Source: Fonticula alba ATCC 38817 (lineage: Eukaryota; Protista; Nucleariida). Taken from it: a stretch of DNA of 31,434 nucleotides. The notes beneath the pieces are model-generated. The model was not told where the DNA came from, did no database searches, and worked only from the letters and a program-made list of their open reading frames with translations. Location of the stretch: assembly GCA_000388065.2 (NCBI GenBank), contig KB932204.1, one strand, 5' to 3'. Shown here piece after piece: positions 6,927 through 27,200 of the stretch. The translations under genes and the position numbers were made by a program. Every line of letters begins with the position of its first letter. The first letter of the stretch is position 1.

Positions 6927-9183
6927 GGAATGGGCAGACAAGAAGAAAGCACAGAGCGGAGCAAAGCCTATCGAGCATCGAGCATCGGGAAATTTGGCCT
7001 AGCTGCGTGTGTGAGGGGGCAGGAGGGGCCCGCGCGGGAACACCACGGTGGCGAGAACCCCCCCCCCGGTGTCATCAAGTCGTCCTCCATCCCCGGTGCC
7101 TCGCTCGCCCGCTGCCGAGGGGGGGCAGGCCGGGTGTGCGGTGCACAGCGGAGACCTAAACGCCTAGTAGCTACCCACTTGGGATCCGGCGAGAGTGCGC
7201 GGGAGAGGGAAGCGAAAAAAGCCCGCTCGCTCGGGCCCAGCCGGCGCATTCCCGCGCCAGGCGTCTCGCGGGGCGGGGGGCGAAAACGCGAGGAAGAAGG
7301 TCTGAGGGGGGGAAGGAGGTTATGGGCGGGGGGGGGGCGTGGCAGCCACGAACCCCCCCACGCATGTAGGCAAGCCGGGGGGGGGGGAGGTCGGGCGCGC
7401 ACATTCCGCCCGCGCGGGTGCCGAGCCCGCCCAACATCCAGGTCCACCAAGTGAGGGGTCTGCCGCCGGCCTGCGCAGGGTCCGCCGAGGCAACACGTCG
7501 GGGTAAAAGCCGAAAGACCAAGGGGGACTCGCAAGGGCCAAGGAAAGAGGGTTAGAGGGAGCCGGCGCTGGCAGCAACCGTCCCTGTTGGCTGCCCCTCC
7601 GGACAAGCAGGGGGATGCGGAATCCCAGGCAGCAACCATGCTGGGACGAGCACGATCAGCCGGTTGAGAGGGCCTCGAGGGACGGCCTCCATCCGCCTCC
7701 CCCCCTTGCCGAAAGTATTGACGAGGGGGAGGGGCCGGGAGGCCCCGCCGCCTGGAGGCGTCAACACCGAGCACCGTCCAGGGGGGAGGGGGGGGGGGGG
7801 GATCCCCCCATGCCTCGAGGACGAGCAAGCATGTGTCGGCCGGCCGGTGCGCGTTCGTCCGCCCTGCCCCGGGCCCGGCCCCGGCGGCCAGAGAGGTGGT
7901 AGAACAGGGCGAGCGGCTGCCAGCGCTGGAATGTGCCGAGGCCAAGTGCGCTCTCCTCGCCGATCCGTTGCCAATGAACGATCCCCGTCCAGGCCGGGCC
8001 GGACCGGGCCGGGCCTCGGGCTGTCCTCCACACGCACCCCAACACCCCTTTCTTTGGCCGGCGAGCGTGCAAGCTTGCATGCACACTTGTCGGGCGCCGT
8101 GAACGCAGGTCCGCCCAGGGACAGGGGGGGAGGGGGCGATCTGACTCGAGCATGCATTCCGATCTAAGGACAGGACTCGTAAGGCCGGACAGTTGGTGTG
8201 TTTGGGGACATTCGTGCGCGCAGGCTCCCGCGCGCCATGTCCCAAAAATTTGGCTCCGCAATTAGGATGTACGCCGGGCATCCTCTCTCAGAGGGGGGAG
8301 AGGCGCCCAACCGGCCGGCGAAAGAGCGCACCACAGTCCGGTCTTCCGGCCTCACTTTAACTGCACCTCGCGGCACCTTTCGCCCCGCCCCCCCCGGGCG
8401 CTCAGGAGCAGCTTCGCACCCCAATCCCCCATAAATGGCGGGGACAATATTCCTCGCTGTATATCTCTGGTCCTGCGCCGTTGCCTCTCCTGAGAGGAAG
8501 TCCTCCACTCACAGGCGGGTGCTCTGTTGGCCCAGGCGCCCCGCGGAGGATCGCCGAAACCCGGAGCCCAAGATAAGCCCGGGTAGAGGGAGGGGCTTTA
8601 TTTCCGGCCCCGGGCTGCGGCCGTACTGTCCGCCAGGCGCCGTCGCCAAGGGCGGAGGTCCTCCGGGCGAAAAGGCGCGGTCCGCATGCTCTCGGCCATG
8701 TGGGGGCCGGCCCCCCCCCCCCCCCCCCCCCCCCGGTCGAAAGATCGGCGGAAGCCCCAAGCCCGCGTGTGGGTTTCTCACTTCCAGCCTCTTCGGGACG
8801 CTCCGGCACTCCAAGGAAGAGAGAGAGAGACCTGCTGCCTCACTCTCTGCCACCGCGGGCGGTTTTCGCGGTCCTGCCTGACTCGGCTTGGGCGCCCGGG
8901 TGCAGGCAAGTATGCATTCCTGCCTTGGCGCATTCCACCTGTCCGAAAAACTCAATAGCATTCCTTGTCTTGGAGGCGAGCCGCCTGCTCGGCCCCCCTC
9001 CCCCGCCCCCTCGCCCCTTCGCAGTCCGTGTCCCGGACCACTCTTTTGTCACTTCCATTCCGGGTTCCCCATCCTTCCGGACCCCATCGACTTGGTCTCC
9101 CTGGCTCTTGCGGAACGAGGGCGAGCTCCTCCTTCCAAGAATTCACCAAGTCTTGAAGCCTTCCAGATGGGCGCCAGGGAATG
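6927..9183. promoter_or_regulatory. Cluster of 10 TEA-domain (M-CAT/TCS) motifs CATTCC/GGAATG in the divergent intergenic region upstream of TEAD
   Basis: Sites at 6927, 7247, 7402, 7928, 8155, 8915, 8931, 8959, 9056 and 9178. Seven match the extended RCATTCC, and three lie within 50 bp (8915-8964). Function is inferred. Confidence 0.45.
8429..8438. promoter_or_regulatory. Canonical CArG box CCATAAATGG (SRF/Mcm1-type MADS site)
   Basis: Exact CC(A/T)6GG match inside the M-CAT cluster; single site. Confidence 0.3.
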
Positions 9184-10633
9184 GGGAACATTATTCCCCT
9201 TGTCCGGGACCCATGTTGTGGCTGCTCGCCAGCGGTTGACGGAGACTCACCTCTGCAGGGGCTCGGGGGGGGGACAGGAGGCCGGAAGGAAAGTCCTCCT
9301 GTCTGGAGAAATGCACACGGAACGCGGGCGAAGAGGGTTGGTCCTCGGCAGACTCCGTAGGTTCCAGGGTCTCTGATATGGGGTCAGCGCCAGCAAATTG
9401 CATCACACGCCCGGCACGTTCCTACGCAAGTATCGCACATGATTATCACTCACTTTGGTTCGCGATCTTTGCTTCCAGCCTCCCAGGTTGTTGCCCCATT
9501 GAGCCACACGGGGCTGGGTCACGTTTCATCCAGGGCATCCCTTCCAAAAGTGGTATGGTCTCGACTCCGCCCCTCATGGCGGGCGGTGGTTGTTATTTCG
9601 CCAGCCCAACTTCCGGTGTTCGGCCAGCGTGGAACACCTGGGACGAGGGGAGGCCGGAAAGCCTGCGTTCGGCTCCGCCCCGTTGCCGGGACCGGCCCCG
9701 GACGAGGATCGTGCCGGAAAGCTGCGAGCGCCATAAGGCATCAGGCTGGGGATGCGGGCGAGGTCCCGCGTCCCGTCGTGTGGAATCTTGGGCGCAGGCA
9801 TGAAACACCGCGCCAAGTAACTGGTCGCCAGTCGGCCGAGAGTCTCCCACCCGGCCTGCGCCCCGATTCCGATGCCGCTGCTGGGAGCATTGGGCGTTTT
9901 GTGAGAGGCGAAGGGGGCTGGTGCCGGCGTATTATCCGCCCTCGCCAACCACCCATCATCTGCTTGTACTTTTGTGGGGTGCCCAGCGAGGTGGAGGCCT
10001 GGGGGAGGACGTCGAGGGTGTGGGTGCCTGGTTGTTCCTTGTTTTTTTTTTTTGCTATTTATTTGATTGTCCAATGGGCGTGCTTGGTCGGGGCGGGTCA
10101 CTTGCCCTTGCGCGTGTTCCCCTCCGGGCCTCGCACATGGGGGAGTGTCCTGGTCCTCATCTTGTGGGCGGGGGGAGGGGGAGGAATTCCAAGTCACTCG
10201 ACGACCCGAGCCCCTGGTGGATTGCTGGGTGTGGGGACACTTGGGCTGTCCTTCCAGCGGTTGGCTTGTTCCTTTCTCCCCGGGCAATGTCCATCCCGCG
10301 GTCTGTTGGTGTGGGGGCGCCCCTGGCCCGATGTGGCAAGAGAGCCTGAGCTTTGCAACCTGGCTGGCGAGGGGAGCTCTTTCACGCGTTTCGAGCCTGT
10401 TGGCGGGCGTCTGGCCACTGACTGAGGGTGATGCGCTCGGGGCATGATTTCGCGTCCAAACTCTCCTGGAAAGGCGAGGAGGAGATGGGGGGGGGGGGGG
10501 GGCTGAGGACGGCGGCTGCTACTTCGGGGAGGGCCATGTACCCCGGCGATTAGAGGCGTGGGGCTACCTGCCTCGTTGCTTGTCTCCTTCTCCGCCTTCT
10601 GTCCGCCTCCCCTCCCCACCTTCCGATCAACCA

Positions 10634-11077
10634 ATGGTATGCGATCTGGCCTTCACCGATGCCCCCATTCCTCCTTCCCCACCTCTCTCTCTCTCTCTCT
10701 CTCGCCCTCTGCCAATCCTTCTGGCGATTGGATCGCCACCGTCGCCGATCTCACCACCACTGACCGGAATCTCTTCATTTCTCGCGTGCTCTCTCTCTCT
10801 CTCTCTATCCCCCTAGCCTCGTGCTACTGTCACTGTCCACCATGGCGGCGGCCACCACCATGGTGGCCACTACCACCACGGCGGCCACCATCATCACCAC
10901 CACGGCGGTCACCACCACCACCACCACGGCGGTCACCACCATCATGTTGTCCACCACCCCCCTCGCGCCCATGTGCATGTTCACCATGGTCACCATCATC
11001 ATGGCCATCACCATCATGGCGGTCACCACCACCACCACCATGGCCACAATGACCAGGCCTGCTGCGTCATCATCTAA
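10634..11077 (+). CDS. His/Gly-rich 87-aa microprotein with C-terminal CCVII prenylation motif. Exon 1 = ATG (10634-10636), intron 10637-10816, exon 2 = 10817-11077
   Basis: ccaATG|GTATGC donor, then a (CT)n polypyrimidine tract and CTAG acceptor (10813-10816) in phase 0. Translation: MPRATVTVHHGGGHHHGGHYHHGGHHHHHHGGHHHHHHGGHHHHVVHHPPRAHVHVHHGHHHHGHHHHGGHHHHHHGHNDQACCVII-stop(TAA). Synonymous CAC/CAT and GGC/GGT variation at third positions supports this frame. Confidence 0.8.
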
Positions 11078-11483
11078 GGGAGTTGCTTTCTCGCCGTATG
11101 GGTTGAGGTGTGTCCATGACGTGTGTGTGTGTGTGTGTGTATGTGCGCGCGCGCGCCCATGCCTACACACCGCCTGTGGCTGGAATGCCCTATTTTACTT
11201 CGTTCCCTTCTCCCCCCGTTGTCCCTCCCCAACTCCCTTGTTCTCTCTCTCTCTCTCTCCCTCCCTCCGCTCTCCAGTCCACTCATGGTCAGGAGAGAAA
11301 GGGGCCGGGGTCTTTTCATGTACATTAGTTCTCCCCCTCCTTGTGGTATCTTACCCCCCAGCGCGTGCTGGAAAATAACAATAGTCACCAATAGAAACCC
11401 ATCTTTCTTGCGACCCCCCCCCCCCTCTCTCTCTCCCTTCCCCGGTCGGTTTGTGGCAATCCGCAGAGGTATGTGCATTCTCG

Positions 11484-12972
11484 CTAAGTCCCATGTCGGG
11501 GGGATGTATCGTCGCGGCCGCGCAACAATCGATGCCCATACCCAAAGAGGGCATGCACTCCGCCGGAATGCACGACCAGCGAATCTCCCTCACCTGTCGA
11601 ACAGCCGATGGTGTGTCCGGAGGAAATGTCCATCTCGGCGGTCATGAAGAGCTTCCCCGAGTAGATGGGGTCCGTGAAAATCCCCGTGGCCCGAGCCAAT
11701 TGGGAAATATATGCCAGGACACTGGCCGGAGCCGAGCCAAAGGACCGGCCCGCCGGGGGCCGGAGGATTTCCAACTGGTGCTGATTCGCAGGGCTCTCCA
11801 AGGCCGGGGACTCCGAGTGCGGGGGAAAGTGTGCTGTCAGCTGGGCAAGTCCCGCCGTAGCTAGGGTCACCTGTTGGCGGAGTCCCGACGGGTCGCCCGC
11901 CATCAAGACCACCTTTGTGGTGACCGGCAGGCCGAGCCAGTCCATGGTGGCGGCAAAGGCCCCGGCCGAGAATCCCGTCCCGGCATCCATGTACACTGTG
12001 GCTGGGAGGCGGATTTCCCTGGGAAAAAAAAAACGAGACACATGCGGAAGGAAGACCCCGCCCGGACCCCGGCCCCGAGGTGGTGAGTCTTACTGTGCCT
12101 TTTCACGGGCGAGCAGGGGGCAGGTGCATTGGCGTGGCGTACTTGGCCAAAATGTGCTCGGCTACTTCCAGCGGAAGGCTCAGGGCACCCGGCAGGGAGG
12201 GAGCGAAGCAGAGGCCCTCGGGCAACACCTCCACCGGTCGGGGGGCCGAGAGAACGCGCCCGGAGGGATGGCCAGCCGCCAGGATGTTCGGTTGACACCA
12301 AGCGTCCTCCAGTTCGCGAGAAAGGACCCCGCGCTGGGCAAGATCCCGCCAAACGTGGTGCTCTGGCCGGTCGCCCGGCGCAAGATCCGTCAGATCCAGC
12401 ATTCGAGCCTCGGTGGGAAGATCAAAGAGGAGCTCAAGCAGAAGCTCATTCGGGGAGATCCCCCGATCGGGGCGTTCCATGGATGGTGACATGGCCAGAG
12501 GGTACACGCGTGGCCGGAGACCACCGCAAGAGGCTTGGCCCGGCGGGGGGGAGTCCTGGAGGCATGGGTTGGTCCGCCCGGAGTGCGCTTCCAGCAAGTA
12601 GGGAATGAGGACCGGGAAGCCACGCTGGCGAAGGACGGCCGCTGTGGCTGGCAGACTGTTGGACCTCCGGCCACCGATCATTGCGACGGCCGGCCGAGCG
12701 GTGCCCGGGTGGGGGTGGGACTCGAGCCAGCGCAAGCAGGAGGCCAACTTGCGGAGCTTATTGCCACCACACTCGGGCGCGCCGAGGAGATCATCGCGTT
12801 TCAGGAGAACTCGTCCAGGCGGCCGAGGGGAGGCGGACGTCGCGCCCACAATCGGCAGACATGCCGTGCTCAGCGCCTGAAGCGGGGAGGGACCAGCAAG
12901 AAGGGCAGGATCCACCAGGGACGTGACGATCTGCCGCAGGAGGGCGACCTTCTTCGTGATTGAGGGGTGCAT
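11484..12972 (-). CDS. dcyD: PLP-dependent D-cysteine desulfhydrase-like enzyme (ACC deaminase/DCyD family). Exons approx. 12972-12143 and 12018-11484; an additional 5' exon is possible
   Basis: Family motifs LLKRDDLLG..CGGNKLRKL (PLP lysine), IGGRRSN, VYMDAGTGFSA, GIFTDPIYSGKLF and VVHSGG. Intron GTACGC...TTTCCCAG joins AA|G in frame. A CTAA...CGCAG acceptor-like element 12 nt upstream of the ATG leaves the N-terminus uncertain. Confidence 0.85.
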
Positions 12973-13209: not shown

Positions 13210-14679
13210 TATGCGTGTATGTGCGTGTTGGTCTTGGACGAGGGCTCTCCGCCCGGTGAGGCCGGCACGCTCCGTAGATCGCCCCGCGCCCAAAAAGGCT
13301 CTGCCGGAGTTGGCAGAAGGCGAGGCACCCGAGCATCACGCGCGCGAATCACGAGAGATCACGTTCGGATGTAACTCCATTTAAAACACCATTCCCAGAG
13401 TACATGAGTCTCGTCAGTTGGTTGTATCCGATGCTCTGGCGATGTCCGGCCCGCCCCGAGCGGGCGGGATGGGTCCCTCATACCTACCCCCCCCCCGCCT
13501 GGCGGTGGCGTCAGGTGGCGTTCGTGCCCTCTCTGTCGCTGTGTTGCCCTGGGTTCCTGTGTTGTCGAGGTGGTCTGTCGGAAGGAGCCTCGTCCCGGCC
13601 TCGTCCCTTGCCAGTCCTCGGCCTGGTGGGGGACCAGATGCGCCCTCATTTAGGTTTACTTGGGAGCCAGGGAGCGATGGTCTTCCTCAACAGGTCCTCC
13701 ACTTCTCCTGTCCCCGCCCCCCCCTGTCCCGGGCCGCGGTCCCCTAGTTCGGACGCAGGACATGTTGGGGGCTGGTCCCACTCAGGGGCCCTTCTGGTCT
13801 TTTTTTCTCCCTTCTCCCTCTCGGGGGAGGGAGGGGGGGCACAACCAACTGGCTCGTGGAGGGTGTCTTGTCTTGGCAGACGCACATGGGTGTGAGGGCG
13901 GTCCGCTCCCGATGGGCTTTCTTGGGGGCGGCGATGTTGCCGACCGCCCTGCCAGTTGGCGGGGGGTGAAAAATTCACCCCCCCGTCCTGGCCCCGGTCT
14001 GGAGGGCCGCGCAACAAGACACTGCCCCCATTCCCTTTTGTGTGTTCCCCTCGCCCTCCTCCTGTCCTCCTTTCGCCTTCCTCTTCCCTGCCACCCTCCC
14101 CCCGTTGCCCCCCTGTTCTTCCTTGCCCACCCTCCCCCCCCCCCCCCGCTCGCCCACCCCCGCCCCTGCCCCCCTGCCGCCAGCACATGCATCTTGTCTG
14201 GGGCGGCTCGCCAGCGTGACGGTGTGACGGCCCATCAGGATGATCTGTTTCCTCGAGGATGTCTGGAAGCCGCCCCCTGAGGCGTCCTTCTCACGGAGTT
14301 CCCGTCTCCCGGAAACCTCGGCCTTCCTTTCCCCCTCTCTCCCTCTCCTCGAGGCCAGCTCCCCATGATGCGGACCGGCTCCCGCTCGCGCCCGGGTCCC
14401 TCTTCAGCACCGGATGGCTGCCGCACTTGTTCCCTCCCAGTGCCCTGGCTGGCTGGTTGGCTGGCTGGCTGGCGGCGGCGGCGGCGGCACTTCGGCCCTT
14501 GCCCGCATGCTCTTGCCGCGGGGTCTGGGCCTTGGAGCAGCCTGCTTGCCCCACTCAGTATGGTCACTTTCACCACTTGCACACTGACACCTTCCCTTCG
14601 TCTGTGTTCTCCCATCCCCGTCCTTCCCTGCCCCGCTTTTCTCCTTCACCAGGGTCCCCTTTGTCTTTACACCTCCAAC

Positions 14680-15526
14680 ATGTTCCGCGTTACTCCCGTT
14701 CTCCGCAAGCAGATGGACATCATGTCCGTTGTCCAGAAGCTCGGTGGCCGCATGACCGCTGTCCAGCGCGCTGAGCTCCTCGAGCTGAGCAAGCAGGTGC
14801 GTCTCCCCCCCCCTCCCTCTCTCTGCCCCTTCTCCCTCTCCGCGCCCTCTCTTTCTCCCAAGGACCATGCCCCGCCTCTGTCTCCGCTGACCCTTCCTCT
14901 CCTTGCACAGTTCACTGAGACCAAGCGCGAGCTTGAGGATCTTTCCAAGGAGCCCAAGCCCATCAACTGGGCCGCTTTCTCCTCCTCCATCAGCGAGAAG
15001 GGTCTGGTCGACTCCTACAAGGCTGCCTACGAGGGCCTCGTCGTCCCCAAGACCGATGTCGCCGCCGCCATTGCCGCCATCAACGCCCAGGAGGCCAGCG
15101 CCCTCAAGCTCGTCAAGGCTCAGGTCCAGGAGTCTGAGGCCCAGATTGCCAAGCTCCAGGCCCAGCTTGCCGCTCTCGACAACGAGGTCCCTCTCGAGAA
15201 GCAGACCGTGCGTATCTGTGCCTTCTCTCTCTCTCTCTCTCTCTCTCTCGCCGTGCACGTGCTGTCAATAGAGCAGCGTGCACGAAGCAGGGGGGCTCGC
15301 CTCATTGGATTCTCGCCACACCTCCCCCTCTTGCTTTCCTTTCTTCCCCTCCCTGTATCCTGGCGCCCAACTCCCCTGTGGAGAACCTCCCTCACTGACA
15401 CCATGCACACCCCCCCCGTGCTCATCTTTCTTCATCCGACAACAGATCGGCCAGATCCTCCGCGACAACCCCGAGGTCAACGCCGAGGTCGAGCTCCGCA
15501 TGCTCCGCACTGGCTACGCCGTCTAA
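14680..15526 (+). CDS. ATP7: Mitochondrial F1Fo ATP synthase subunit d, 164 aa. Exons 14680-14796, 14911-15207, 15446-15526
   Basis: Spliced product MFRVTPVLRKQMDIMSVVQKLGG...FTETKRELEDLSKEPKPINWAAFSSSISEKGLVDSYKAAYEGLVVPK...LAALDNEVPLEKQTIGQILRDNPEVNAEVELRMLRTGYAV matches the subunit d layout as I recall it (P..IDW..Y, ..P.E..T+.++....PE+...+). Two GTGCGT...CAG phase-0 introns; strong GC3 bias. Confidence 0.88.
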
Positions 15527-16441
15527 GTGTGTGTGTGTGCCGTGCTGTGCCTCCCTCCCAGCCATGCGCGCGTGCCTCCCGGTGTAGCTGCGTGTGTGTT
15601 TGCCCGCGTGGCCGCACGCATATGCACGCACGCGCTCGCCTCCCCGCCGCCCTTTTCTCCTCATATTTCCCCAGACCGCGCCGAAAGCCGCACCGTGTAT
15701 GCAAAAAGGAGGGGGAGAGGTCATGCGCCCCTCTTCCATCTGGTTGTCCTCCATGCGGCAGCTCTCGGTTGTCTGGCCTCCCTCCCCCCCACCCAATCAC
15801 CTTCCCTCCCCTGACTACACCAACACACTCCACAGCGCATCCATGCTCCGTGCCTCTGCCCCTCTTCTCCGCACTGATATTTCCCCCTTTTTTCTCTCTA
15901 TCCGGGTTTTTTTTTTTGCTCTCTTCCTCTTCGTGTGTATGTTCGGCAGACGGGGGGGGGGGGGGGGGATGTCTACTGGGGGAGGGGTGGGGGAGATGGG
16001 ATTTTGTCGACCGGTCACCTTTTTGTGACGGTGACTGAGCTCTCCGCCCACACCTCCTGGCCTCTCTGGCCCACTCTCTTCTGCTCGTCTTTGTTCCCTT
16101 CCCGCAGTGACCGAGTCTTGCGTACGGGGAGGAGAGAGGCCATGGATGTTCCCAGGCGCGGGGGCGACCATCTTCGAGGGCTCCGCGGCGTTAGCCGTTG
16201 TTCTGCAAGAGAGGACTCCAGAATAACATGTGTTCAGCCATTTGCGTTGGCATTCGCCGTGTGCTGTAAACAGCTCATCAGATCTCTCGCCGGGTCTTGA
16301 GACGTGTGGGTGTATTCACGTTGGCATGTTGCACCAAGGCCTGTTGGGTTCTCTCTTTGTTGATTAGAGTCTCTATCTTCGAGTTATCCATGGTCCCAGG
16401 GCCTCTCTTTGTCTATTTCTCTCTCTCTCTCTCTCTCTCTC

Positions 16442-24244: not shown

Positions 24245-27200
24245 TTATACGGCCATATCGCCGAGAGATTGGGCAGCGGGGTCAGCTCCGACGGCCCCAT
24301 TGCCAGCTGGACTCGCGCCTGGCTGCCGATGAGGGTGGTGGTGGGGATGATGGACGTGGGGATGGGAAGGGTAGGCATGGTGGGGATGCTGGGCATGGTG
24401 GGGGCCGGGGGAGCGGGTTAAGGTCGTGCTAGCAGGCGCCAGCGAATGGTGCTGGTGTTGATGGTGCTGCTGCTGCTGCTGCTGTGGAGGATGCTGATGC
24501 GACAGCGGCGGGAGGGCGGTCAAGTGACCCCCAATGCTGCCAGCAGTGGCACCGATGGCCGCCGACTGTGAGTACGATAGGCTTGCGGGGGCCGGGGCAT
24601 AGGACCCGCCCACTGGGCTCCCACCACCAGGACCGGACTGCTGCTGCCCCGGGGAAGGGGCCATATGGCCAAAGTGGAGGGGAAGGTGATGCGGGTGCCC
24701 GGCGAAAGCAAAGATGTGCGGATGATGGAGCGAGGCATTGCCGATCGGCGCGCCGGAAACCCCGGTCGGGACCACATGCGAGCGGAGGTGGCCACCTGGC
24801 AGGCCGAGAGGGCCAACTTGCTGCAGGTGATGTAGATGGTGGTGATGCATGTGCGGATGATGGGACCCCAGAACCGCCATCGGGCCATGGCCAATAGGCA
24901 ACAAAACATGGGACGGCCCGCCCGGAGGGGGAACCGACACCATATGTGTGCCACCCGGACTGAGGCCACCAGCGCCATTGCTGCCCACGGGCGACGAGCC
25001 GCCAGGGGCCTGAGAGGATACCGCTTGCTGGCCGGCCGCGGCAGCGGCCATAGCCGCCGCAAATGCCTGGGAATATTGCATGTGCATGTGGGGGAGATGC
25101 ATCCCGGTCCCATTGGGGGCATATGTCTGGTCATGGGGGCTAGTTGATCCGTTGGTCATGGAAATGGAAGGGCCACCTTGAGAAGCGGCTGTAGTTGCGG
25201 CGGCGGCAGCGGCGGCGGCGGCGGCAGCAGCCATGGCGGCCGAGGGGGGAGCCCCGGCCGACGGAGAGGGCGCGCTTACCGGGGACAGGGGCCGACCCCA
25301 CATGTGGCTGTTGAAGGAGGGATCGCTGCCAGTGGTGGCGGCAGCGGCCGCGGCCGCGGCCGCAGCCGCAGCGGCAAGCATCTCCGGACTGGCTTTCATG
25401 AACTGTTGTGAGGCCAGGAGGCCAAGCAGGAAGTCCGAAGAATATGTCGGAATCGGGCCCTACACGACGCTCTTCCGATCTGCAGCGGCCGCGGCCGCGG
25501 CCGCAGCCGCAGCGGCAAGCATCTCCGGACTGGCTTTCATGAACTGTTGTGAGGCCAGGAGGCCAAGCAGGAAGTCCGAAGAATATGTCGGAATCGGGGC
25601 CGAATCGACCGGGGCAATGCCGGGGGCAGGAGAAAGGGGCACCGAGGTGGCTGCTGGAGGCCCATCCTGGACGACTGGCACGGGGTTGCCTCCCGAACTG
25701 AGGGAAGAGGCCGAAGCAGTCGAGGCAGTCAGACCGGATGCCGAGCCTGGACTCGGACTCGAGCCCGAGCCCGAGGCGGCGGTCTGTGCCAAAGATGGCC
25801 CCGGAGCCGCGGCAGCACTCGAAGAGATCGGAAGAGCACACGTCACCGAGGTGGCTGCTGGAGGCCCATCCTGGACGACTGGCACGGGGTTGCCTCCCGA
25901 ACTGAGGGAAGAGGCCGAAGCAGTCGAGGCAGTCAGACCGGATGCCGAGCCTGGACTCGGACTCGAGCCCGAGCCCGAGGCGGCGGTCTGTGCCAAAGAT
26001 GGCCCCGGAGCCGCGGCAGCACTCGAAGTTGAGGCCTGCTCCGGGGAGGAGGACGGAGCCGGATGGGGAGCAGGACCAGGAGCTACGCCAAGAGCAGGAG
26101 TGGGGGTGGAGGAGGAGGAGGAGGAGGAGGAGGAAGAGGAGGAGGTCTGGGATGGAGCCACGGGCATGGGTGTGGGGCCAGAGGCGGAGGTCGTGGCCGA
26201 GACCGAGGAAGAAGGAGCAACCGGAGCAGCCGAGGTTGCGGCACTGGACGAGTGTACTGGGGGAGATGGTCCATGGCCGCGTGAGGCAGGGTCCTCATCG
26301 ACGACATTGCACATCCAGATCCGGGTCTTGTAAACCTTGAAAAGCTCGCGCACGAGATCACGGAAGTCAATTCGACGCTCGGCAATGAAGTAGTATGTCA
26401 GCTTCTTCCGGTCCCACTGGTACTCAGCATTGACCACCTCCATGGGGAGTTTGCGCGCGCGGCACTTGGCCTGGCACAGCATCAGGGCCTTCTGCTCGTC
26501 GGAGGTCTTCTGAGCCAGCTGCTCGGCCTCACTGGGCTGCGCCAGCCGGCAGATGGGCTTGAGCGAGACATCCGGCACTTCGGATCGGGGGAGGCGCTCG
26601 ACAATGCGGCCAAGGTCACACCCGCGATCGGCCTCCACCAAAACCAGATCATCCTTCTGGTAGTGGGGGGTCGTCAGGGTGCCATTGGTGTTGGCGTTGT
26701 TTTGCTGCATCATTTGCAGGAGATTCGCCTGGGCCTGCTGCTGTTGATGCTGGCGAACCGCCTCACCGCGGAGGAATGGCCGCGACCCGGAGAGAAGATC
26801 CGCCGAGTAGGTCAAGCCAATGTTGGATTTGGTTGAGAAGAAGAGGGCCGATCGACCGGACTTGAACTCCACCCGGTAGAACTCCGTATCAGCTGGAAGG
26901 CTACCCAGGGAAAGAGACCCGGCATTGGGGCCAGAGCTGACATGGTGCGGGCCGCCGCCGCCGCCGCCGCCGCCGCCGGTCGGTTGCGAGGGGACCGGTG
27001 CCGAGCCAAAGGACCCTCCCTGGGAGGTGTTGTCTTTTTGGAGATCATCGGCATCGGCCTTGTCCTGATACGGGGGGAGGCTCTCCTCTTCGGAGAAGGC
27101 CGGCTCGGGGGAGGGCCGCTCATGGCCGGCTATGGGCGCATCCATGAAGGGGAAGGGGGTCGCAGACGGTGATAAAAAAAGAAAAAAAGAAAAAAAGGAC

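Follow-up and report, generated by a model that had tools for sequence, protein, structure and literature searches.

Gene structure and transcription

The window analysed here, a stretch of 31,434 nucleotides from Fonticula alba ATCC 38817, contains a short gene on the plus strand that encodes an unusually histidine-rich protein (the His gene). The adjacent gene, convergent with it and read from the minus strand (exons 12972–12142 and 12017–11484), has a product that is 100% identical to protein H696_03186 of F. alba, which is carried by KB932204.1, a 3.07 Mb record of assembly GCA_000388065.2. Further neighbours code for an RCC1-repeat protein and for subunit d of the mitochondrial ATP synthase, and no gene nearby hints at a functional link to the His gene. 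We note that the ATP synthase d domain falls in a plus-strand open reading frame of 557 residues (14365–16038), of which it occupies residues 185–282 only. The deposited model at this position is a spliced product of 164 residues, which marks the 557-residue frame as an artefact of high GC content.

Exon 1 of the His gene, to the extent given by the RNA contigs, spans 10598–10636 (+) and corresponds to positions 460–498 of record 1 from run X1. It consists of approximately 36 nt of 5′ untranslated sequence followed by the start codon, ATG 10634–10636, which is the first ATG of the transcribed stretch; the nearest ATG 5′ of the exon is at 10536, beyond the RNA contig. A phase 0 intron of 180 nt follows (10637–10816, +), with GT..AG borders and the sequence GTATGC...(CT)n...CCCCCTAG. 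The coding part of exon 2 (10817–11077, +) contributes 86 codons and a TAA stop and translates as PRATVTVHHGGGHHHGGHYHHGGHHHHHHGGHHHHHHGGHHHHVVHHPPRAHVHVHHGHHHHGHHHHGGHHHHHHGHNDQACCVII-stop, so that together with the initiator Met the product is 87 residues long. The 3′ untranslated region extends from 11078 to at least 11386 (+) in X1 record 1 and X2 record 6. An in-frame TAG (10814–10816) sits within the intron and exon 2 has no in-frame ATG, and as a result the open reading frame list for the window gives only a 34-residue GTG fragment at this place. Simple repeats are frequent around the gene: (CT)n tracts lie inside the intron at 10683–10703 and 10789–10806, the 3′ untranslated region contains (GT)12 at 11121–11145 and (TC)13 at 11242–11267, and a G16 homopolymer is located at 10487–10502, about 95 nt 5′ of the first transcribed base seen.

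The transcript data come from four public runs dating from 2012 which cover the region. These are RNA, as judged from the absence of the neighbour's intron 12018–12141 in all four runs, from zero depth over 8500–10503 (the 2 kb that precede the His gene) and from the fact that the His-gene contig is itself spliced. This contig, X1 record 1, is 498 nt in length with a word depth of about 236. It carries 10598–10636 at record positions 460–498 and 10819–11113 at 163–457, leaving two letters (10817–10818) between 10636 and 10819, and the 180 nt intron has therefore been removed. The joint was not listed by the contig mapping because 10672–10818 was masked as a repeat, and the junction 10636/10817 was deduced from the record positions and the splice-site sequences. 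The splice is present in the contig of one of the four runs (X1), the contigs of the other three beginning inside exon 2. The remaining 162 letters of X1 record 1 match the masked stretch 11114–11275 exactly, and X2 record 6 is likewise collinear through this stretch and extends to 11386. Taken together, the two records show exon 2 as a single unspliced stretch that starts at 10817 and reaches at least 11386.

At both splice sites, a GTATGC donor and an acceptor rich in pyrimidines, the intron resembles intron 12018–12141 of H696_03186, which is confirmed. Contig depth, a rough measure, is 200–290 for the His gene compared with 5–65 for H696_03186. The His gene is a real, spliced gene of F. 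alba, and it is clearly strongly transcribed. A search of 10300–11600 against Rfam gave no match at or near gathering scores, and the intron thus contains no snoRNA. At the 3′ side, between 11276 and 11480, the His-gene (+) contig reaches 11386 while H696_03186 (−), with its stop at 11484, has a contig that continues down to 11276. This suggests, but with directionless contigs does not prove, that the convergent 3′ untranslated regions of the two genes overlap or abut.

The translated frame and the deposited model

Assembly GCA_000388065.2 places a gene at 10842–11394 (+), which from the gene order we take to be H696_03185, with a 91-residue product rich in Thr, Ile, Met and Ala that is read in the +1 frame relative to the His frame. 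A product of 91 residues requires an intron at 11108–11384, which is the only single GT..AG intron giving this length. In two runs the RNA contigs continue collinearly through this supposed intron, from which it follows that the locus is mis-framed in the deposited annotation. The 10842–11394 model is probably a mis-framed version of the His-gene transcript, and the record at this position probably needs correction. Without the intron, the Thr frame would yield 178 residues and would run through the (GT)12 and (TC)13 microsatellites, whereas the His frame stops at 11077, ahead of both. Dinucleotide repeats of this kind mark noncoding sequence and helped us to reject the annotated frame.

The arrangement and codon usage of the transcript also favour the His frame. 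The earliest AUG in the mRNA, which abuts the splice donor exactly, opens this frame, and the AUG at 10842 is the second. Within the repeats, every variation changes an amino acid when read in the Thr frame (T/I/M or A/V). Read in the His frame, the C-to-T variants of CAC comprise 16 CAT (silent) and one TAC (replacement), whereas under neutral decay the two classes would be equally frequent (binomial p = 0.0003). All Gly codons of the His frame are GGC or GGT, and its CAC:CAT and GGC:GGT ratios of 29:16 and 11:5 match those of H696_03186 (11:5 and 17:7, respectively). The amino-acid entropy is lowest in the His frame (1.63 bits; the other frames have 2.5 and 2.19). Two observations point the other way. 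The context of the second AUG (ccaccATGg) is stronger, by the vertebrate-type standard, than that of the first (aaccaATGc), so that leaky scanning is possible, and GC3 is 0.88 in the Thr frame compared with 0.65 in the His frame, a difference that probably led the gene finder to the former. In our view the translated frame is very likely the His frame, and a correct deposited model, whether of 91 or 178 residues, is highly improbable. The remaining frames were also considered: the Pro-rich frame was rejected for want of an AUG in the spliced mRNA, and a minus-strand Val/Met open reading frame (10805–11170) was rejected as lying on the wrong strand, since the intron has its GT..AG borders on the plus strand only.

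We also considered that the transcript is real but that the His frame is under no selection, being either a young frame produced by expansion of a CAC/CAT repeat or part of an RNA with an untranslated role. The coding region is mostly made up of tandem repeats with periods of 18 and 24 nt, other His-rich tracts are present in Fonticula, and no homologue emerged from any of the searches described below, all of which favour this reading. It does not account well for the 16:1 excess of silent over replacement variants or for codon ratios like those of a normal gene. Nor does it explain a start codon placed exactly at the donor whose splicing joins the His frame and removes the in-frame stop, the very high transcript depth or a C-terminal tail that is canonical and nonrepetitive. 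We consider a frame without selected function to be improbable.

The preliminary description of this locus, drawn up from the letters alone, had placed the junction at 10636/10817 and had noted that the gene was missing from the open reading frame list and was liable to be missed or mis-framed by annotation; the RNA contigs and the deposited model agree with it on each point. As a case of annotation failure the locus is instructive: a first exon with a single codon, a coding region of low complexity and an alternative frame with high GC3 have led to a model in the wrong frame. With such a model in public use the real product is missing from the protein databases, and its orthologues are probably missing as well.

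Composition of the protein and its C-terminal tail

The 87-residue protein, with a mass of about 9.9 kDa, contains 45 His, 16 Gly, seven Val, two Cys, two Arg, a single Asp and no Glu, and ends in NDQACCVII. The His runs are one to six residues in length and are separated mostly by G, GG or GGG and otherwise by Y, VV, PPRA or V. Block 1 (residues 9–44; 10838–10945, +) consists of HH, HHH, H, HH, H6, H6 and H4 runs with GGG, GG and Y spacers, while block 2 (residues 53–78; 10970–11047, +) ends in HHHHHHGH directly before the tail; the linker between the two blocks is VVHHPPRAHVHV. Comparable His density is found nowhere else in the 31 kb window. We note a weaker His/Pro-rich tract at 24329–24418 (−), inside an open reading frame of 384 residues (24245–25399), in which 13 of 30 residues are His. 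Low-complexity tracts rich in His are thus not unique to the His gene in Fonticula.

By inspection, the N-terminus (MPRATVTV) and the lack of any hydrophobic stretch indicate that there is neither a signal peptide nor a membrane-spanning segment, and the sequence as a whole is that of a protein with a cytosol-exposed C-terminus. Residue 2 is Pro, which rules out N-myristoylation. A single-sequence AlphaFold model has no secondary structure (pTM 0.17, mean pLDDT 58), a result which fits an intrinsically disordered chain and does not fit the β-trefoil of hisactophilin that is discussed below.

The tail CCVII (11060–11074, +) comprises a CaaX box, C84-V85-I86-I87, and the adjacent upstream Cys83. 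Cys84 is at position −4 from the stop and is followed by two aliphatic residues, as in a canonical Ca1a2X sequence. With Ile as X, the box belongs to the Caa[L/F/I/M/V] class that is modified by GGTase-I, although CVII as such is absent from the main text of the paper that sets out this rule (PMC11304957). As an empirical null we used all stop-terminated open segments of at least 20 residues in the six frames of the window. The ending C[VIL][VIL][LFIMV] occurs in one of these 603 segments, which is the His open reading frame, and a further Cys stands ahead of it in that one alone. In Ras2 and in H-Ras-type anchors palmitoylation takes place on a Cys that adjoins the prenylated one. FTase and GGTase-I are near-universal in eukaryotes.

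Were the CaaX-like end coincidental or unused, the His-rich protein would be made but not lipidated, and would serve as a soluble cytosolic buffer of metals or protons. Many windows were scanned, and one chance CaaX ending is to be expected somewhere among them. Set against this are the rarity of the strict motif within the present window, the second Cys in front of it and the manner in which NDQACCVII breaks from the His/Gly repeat, with the only two Cys of the protein placed exactly at −5 and −4. An unlipidated product consequently seems to us a minor possibility.

A prenylated tail could also belong to the precursor of a secreted lipopeptide signal resembling the fungal a-factor, from which the His-rich N-terminal part would be cut off. 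The comparison is invited by the small size of the CaaX protein, by the high expression of its gene and by the kinship of Fonticula with the fungi, but precursors of the a-factor type are approximately 30–70 residues long and end in a farnesyl CaaX box in which X is A, M, S or C. The protein described here, with 87 residues, is far longer than the known precursors, and its terminal Ile points to geranylgeranyl where the known pheromones carry farnesyl. The extra adjacent Cys suggests a stable dual anchor, and a polyhistidine pro-region has no known precedent. We regard a pheromone-like precursor as extremely improbable.

Comparison with known proteins and possible function

Sequence searches returned no relatives. 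A word-indexed phmmer search of 5.8 billion proteins produced 7621 candidates, none of them at E ≤ 0.001, and an exhaustive phmmer search of 1.84 billion representatives produced no match. Pfam gave no family at E values up to 0.01. In a PDB-wide phmmer search with E values up to 10 the sole match was to a His run in two chains of condensin subunit 2 (query residues 21–43 against chain residues 757–779 of 811), which we read as purification tags. The best result of a feature-based search of the ESM Atlas was an unnamed cluster with a score of 0.70 and the top named lead was CYSTM, which scored a weak 0.56; neither reaches what the tool treats as meaningful. We also scanned metagenomes for a DNA pattern composed of a His run, Cys-Cys within 36 nt, three hydrophobic residues and a stop. 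This gave 52 loci, of which 15 were left after an in-frame filter, with frames of 16–69 codons that contained little beyond one His run and that we judged to be chance or simple-repeat matches. Little should be read into the blank homology searches: HMMER corrects for biased composition, the product of the His frame is absent from the databases and products of 87 residues are usually discarded from transcriptome-derived proteomes. The annotated Thr-frame protein of the same locus was likewise not recovered by homology search. The searchable literature contained no paper linking Fonticula with histidine-rich proteins or with H696_03185 and no description of a His-rich CaaX protein; a 2026 preprint that mentions Fonticula contains no expression data for this organism.

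Hisactophilin from Dictyostelium discoideum is the nearest protein in character. Both proteins are small and very rich in His, both come from aggregative amoebae and both have a charge that titrates near neutral pH; hisactophilin is abundant, cytosolic and anchored by a lipid, as the Fonticula protein is expected to be. The two differ in construction. Hisactophilin is a folded β-trefoil with an N-terminal myristoyl group on Gly2, whereas the Fonticula protein has Pro2, a C-terminal CaaX box and H/G repeats without predicted secondary structure, and the PDB-wide search at E values up to 10 revealed no sequence similarity between them. The 87-residue protein is not a member of the hisactophilin family, and hisactophilin is plausibly a functional analogue.

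Two other groups of metal-binding proteins offer partial parallels. The plant HIPPs resemble the Fonticula protein in joining metal binding, which is putative in the latter, to a C-terminal CaaX prenylation signal. Their metal site, a CxxC, is part of a folded HMA domain, whereas the ligands in the Fonticula protein would be imidazoles on a disordered chain, and no HMA domain (PF00403) was found by Pfam at E values up to 0.01. Hpn from Helicobacter pylori is a short, abundant cytosolic nickel or zinc sponge with approximately 50% His; it is bacterial and soluble and has no lipid signal. It shares with the Fonticula protein a His content of about one half, His6-type runs, Gly spacers and a low number of Cys. 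We attribute the likeness to compositional convergence, homology between the two being undetectable and unlikely.

The preliminary description fared well on the protein itself. Its account of the composition (45 His in 87 residues, one Asp and an NDQACCVII end) is correct in every element and its reading of the tail as a prenylation signal agrees with the GGTase-I rule (PMC11304957). Its remarks that the protein belonged to no recognisable family and was not evidently homologous to hisactophilin or the HIPPs are borne out by the blank Pfam and phmmer searches, the tag-only PDB match, the missing HMA domain and the absence of a predicted fold.

With regard to the anchor, the closest parallels are among the Ras proteins. 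As in yeast Ras2 (CCIIS), a Cys directly precedes the CaaX Cys, and the run of six titratable basic residues a few residues upstream of the box has its counterpart in the polylysine stretch of K-Ras4B, such that KKKKKKSKTK-CVIM is comparable with HHHHHHGHNDQAC-CVII. The Fonticula protein differs from these in having no GTPase domain, in using His rather than Lys and in having Ile as X, which suggests geranylgeranyl rather than farnesyl. CYSTM proteins (PF12734) are also small and eukaryotic; their N-terminal part is of low complexity and the membrane anchor at their C-terminus contains Cys. Their Cys-rich transmembrane module is approximately 20 residues long, whereas only ACCVII follows the repeat in the Fonticula protein; the latter has no Pfam match and only two Cys, and its tail lacks the length to cross a membrane.

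We tentatively propose, as the reading best supported by the composition and the C-terminal motif, that the His gene may encode a lipid-anchored, disordered polyhistidine chain that responds to metals and to pH at the cytosolic face of membranes. Cys84 would most likely be geranylgeranylated, as the terminal Ile suggests, after which the -VII residues would be trimmed and the new C-terminus methylated; Cys83 may in addition be palmitoylated. The lipidated tail would then hold the chain at the cytosolic side of membranes, where its approximately 45 imidazoles would constitute a high-capacity binder or buffer for Zn2+, Cu2+ or Ni2+. His6-type runs bind metals, as in immobilized-metal affinity and in Helicobacter Hpn, and when combined with flexible Gly spacers are classic ligands of Ni, Cu and Zn. 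Sites made of imidazole only may be too weak for Zn at resting cytosolic free-metal levels. Imidazoles titrate at about pH 6–7, and the loading of protons or metals would therefore shift the chain from near-neutral to strongly cationic. The computed net charge is +0.3 at pH 8, +1.5 at pH 7.5, +4.4 at pH 7, +11 at pH 6.5 and +23 at pH 6.

The main alternative, in view of this charge profile, is that the same lipid-anchored protein serves as a pH-gated polybasic switch and has no part in metal handling. The HHHHHHGHNDQAC-CVII segment would then act in the manner of the K-Ras4B polylysine-plus-CaaX anchor, with His replacing Lys, and would bind acidic lipids or actin only once the cytosolic pH drops, a function similar to that of hisactophilin. 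The steep rise in computed charge between pH 7.5 and pH 6, the position of a His6 run seven residues upstream of the CaaX Cys and a chain with one Asp and no Glu are all in keeping with such a switch. Hisactophilin itself is an established pH switch that combines a lipid with histidines in another aggregative amoeba (PMC13405390). None of our tests favours pH over metals, and neighbouring charges within long His runs lower the pKa, so the actual swing will be smaller than that computed. If Cys83 is palmitoylated, the anchor would moreover be stable and a second, electrostatic signal would be unneeded for membrane binding. We think it rather unlikely that pH gating is the sole role. A metal role and a pure pH role are not mutually exclusive and our results are compatible with either; as a metal sponge or as a pH switch, the role suggested for the protein is a reasonable inference from its composition. 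A form in which both would be combined, again rather unlikely in our estimation, is a prenyl-anchored polyhistidine that works like the K-Ras polybasic anchor but is gated by protons and zinc. It would be an abundant, disordered polymer at the membrane surface which, as cytosolic pH or metal load changes, alternates between a neutral and a strongly cationic state and thereby recruits or releases acidic lipids and actin. Such an anchor would be a solution reached without kinship in sequence or fold to hisactophilin.

If it is made and lipidated as we tentatively propose, the product of the His gene would be, as far as the searchable literature shows, the first CaaX-anchored microprotein composed of polyhistidine. 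Fonticula represents the other lineage of aggregative amoebae, next to the fungi, and the 'lipid plus histidines' design of hisactophilin would then have arisen there independently. For metal and pH biology it would provide a minimal natural polyhistidine membrane protein, putative at present but easily tested.

Finally, we note a second His-run transcript in the same RNA data. A contig of 844 nt, present in all four runs at a depth of 12–16, matches the window only at the CAC runs 10909–10927 and 11024–11048 and continues into unrelated sequence, which indicates a separate transcript from elsewhere in the Fonticula genome. It is possibly a paralogue of the His gene.
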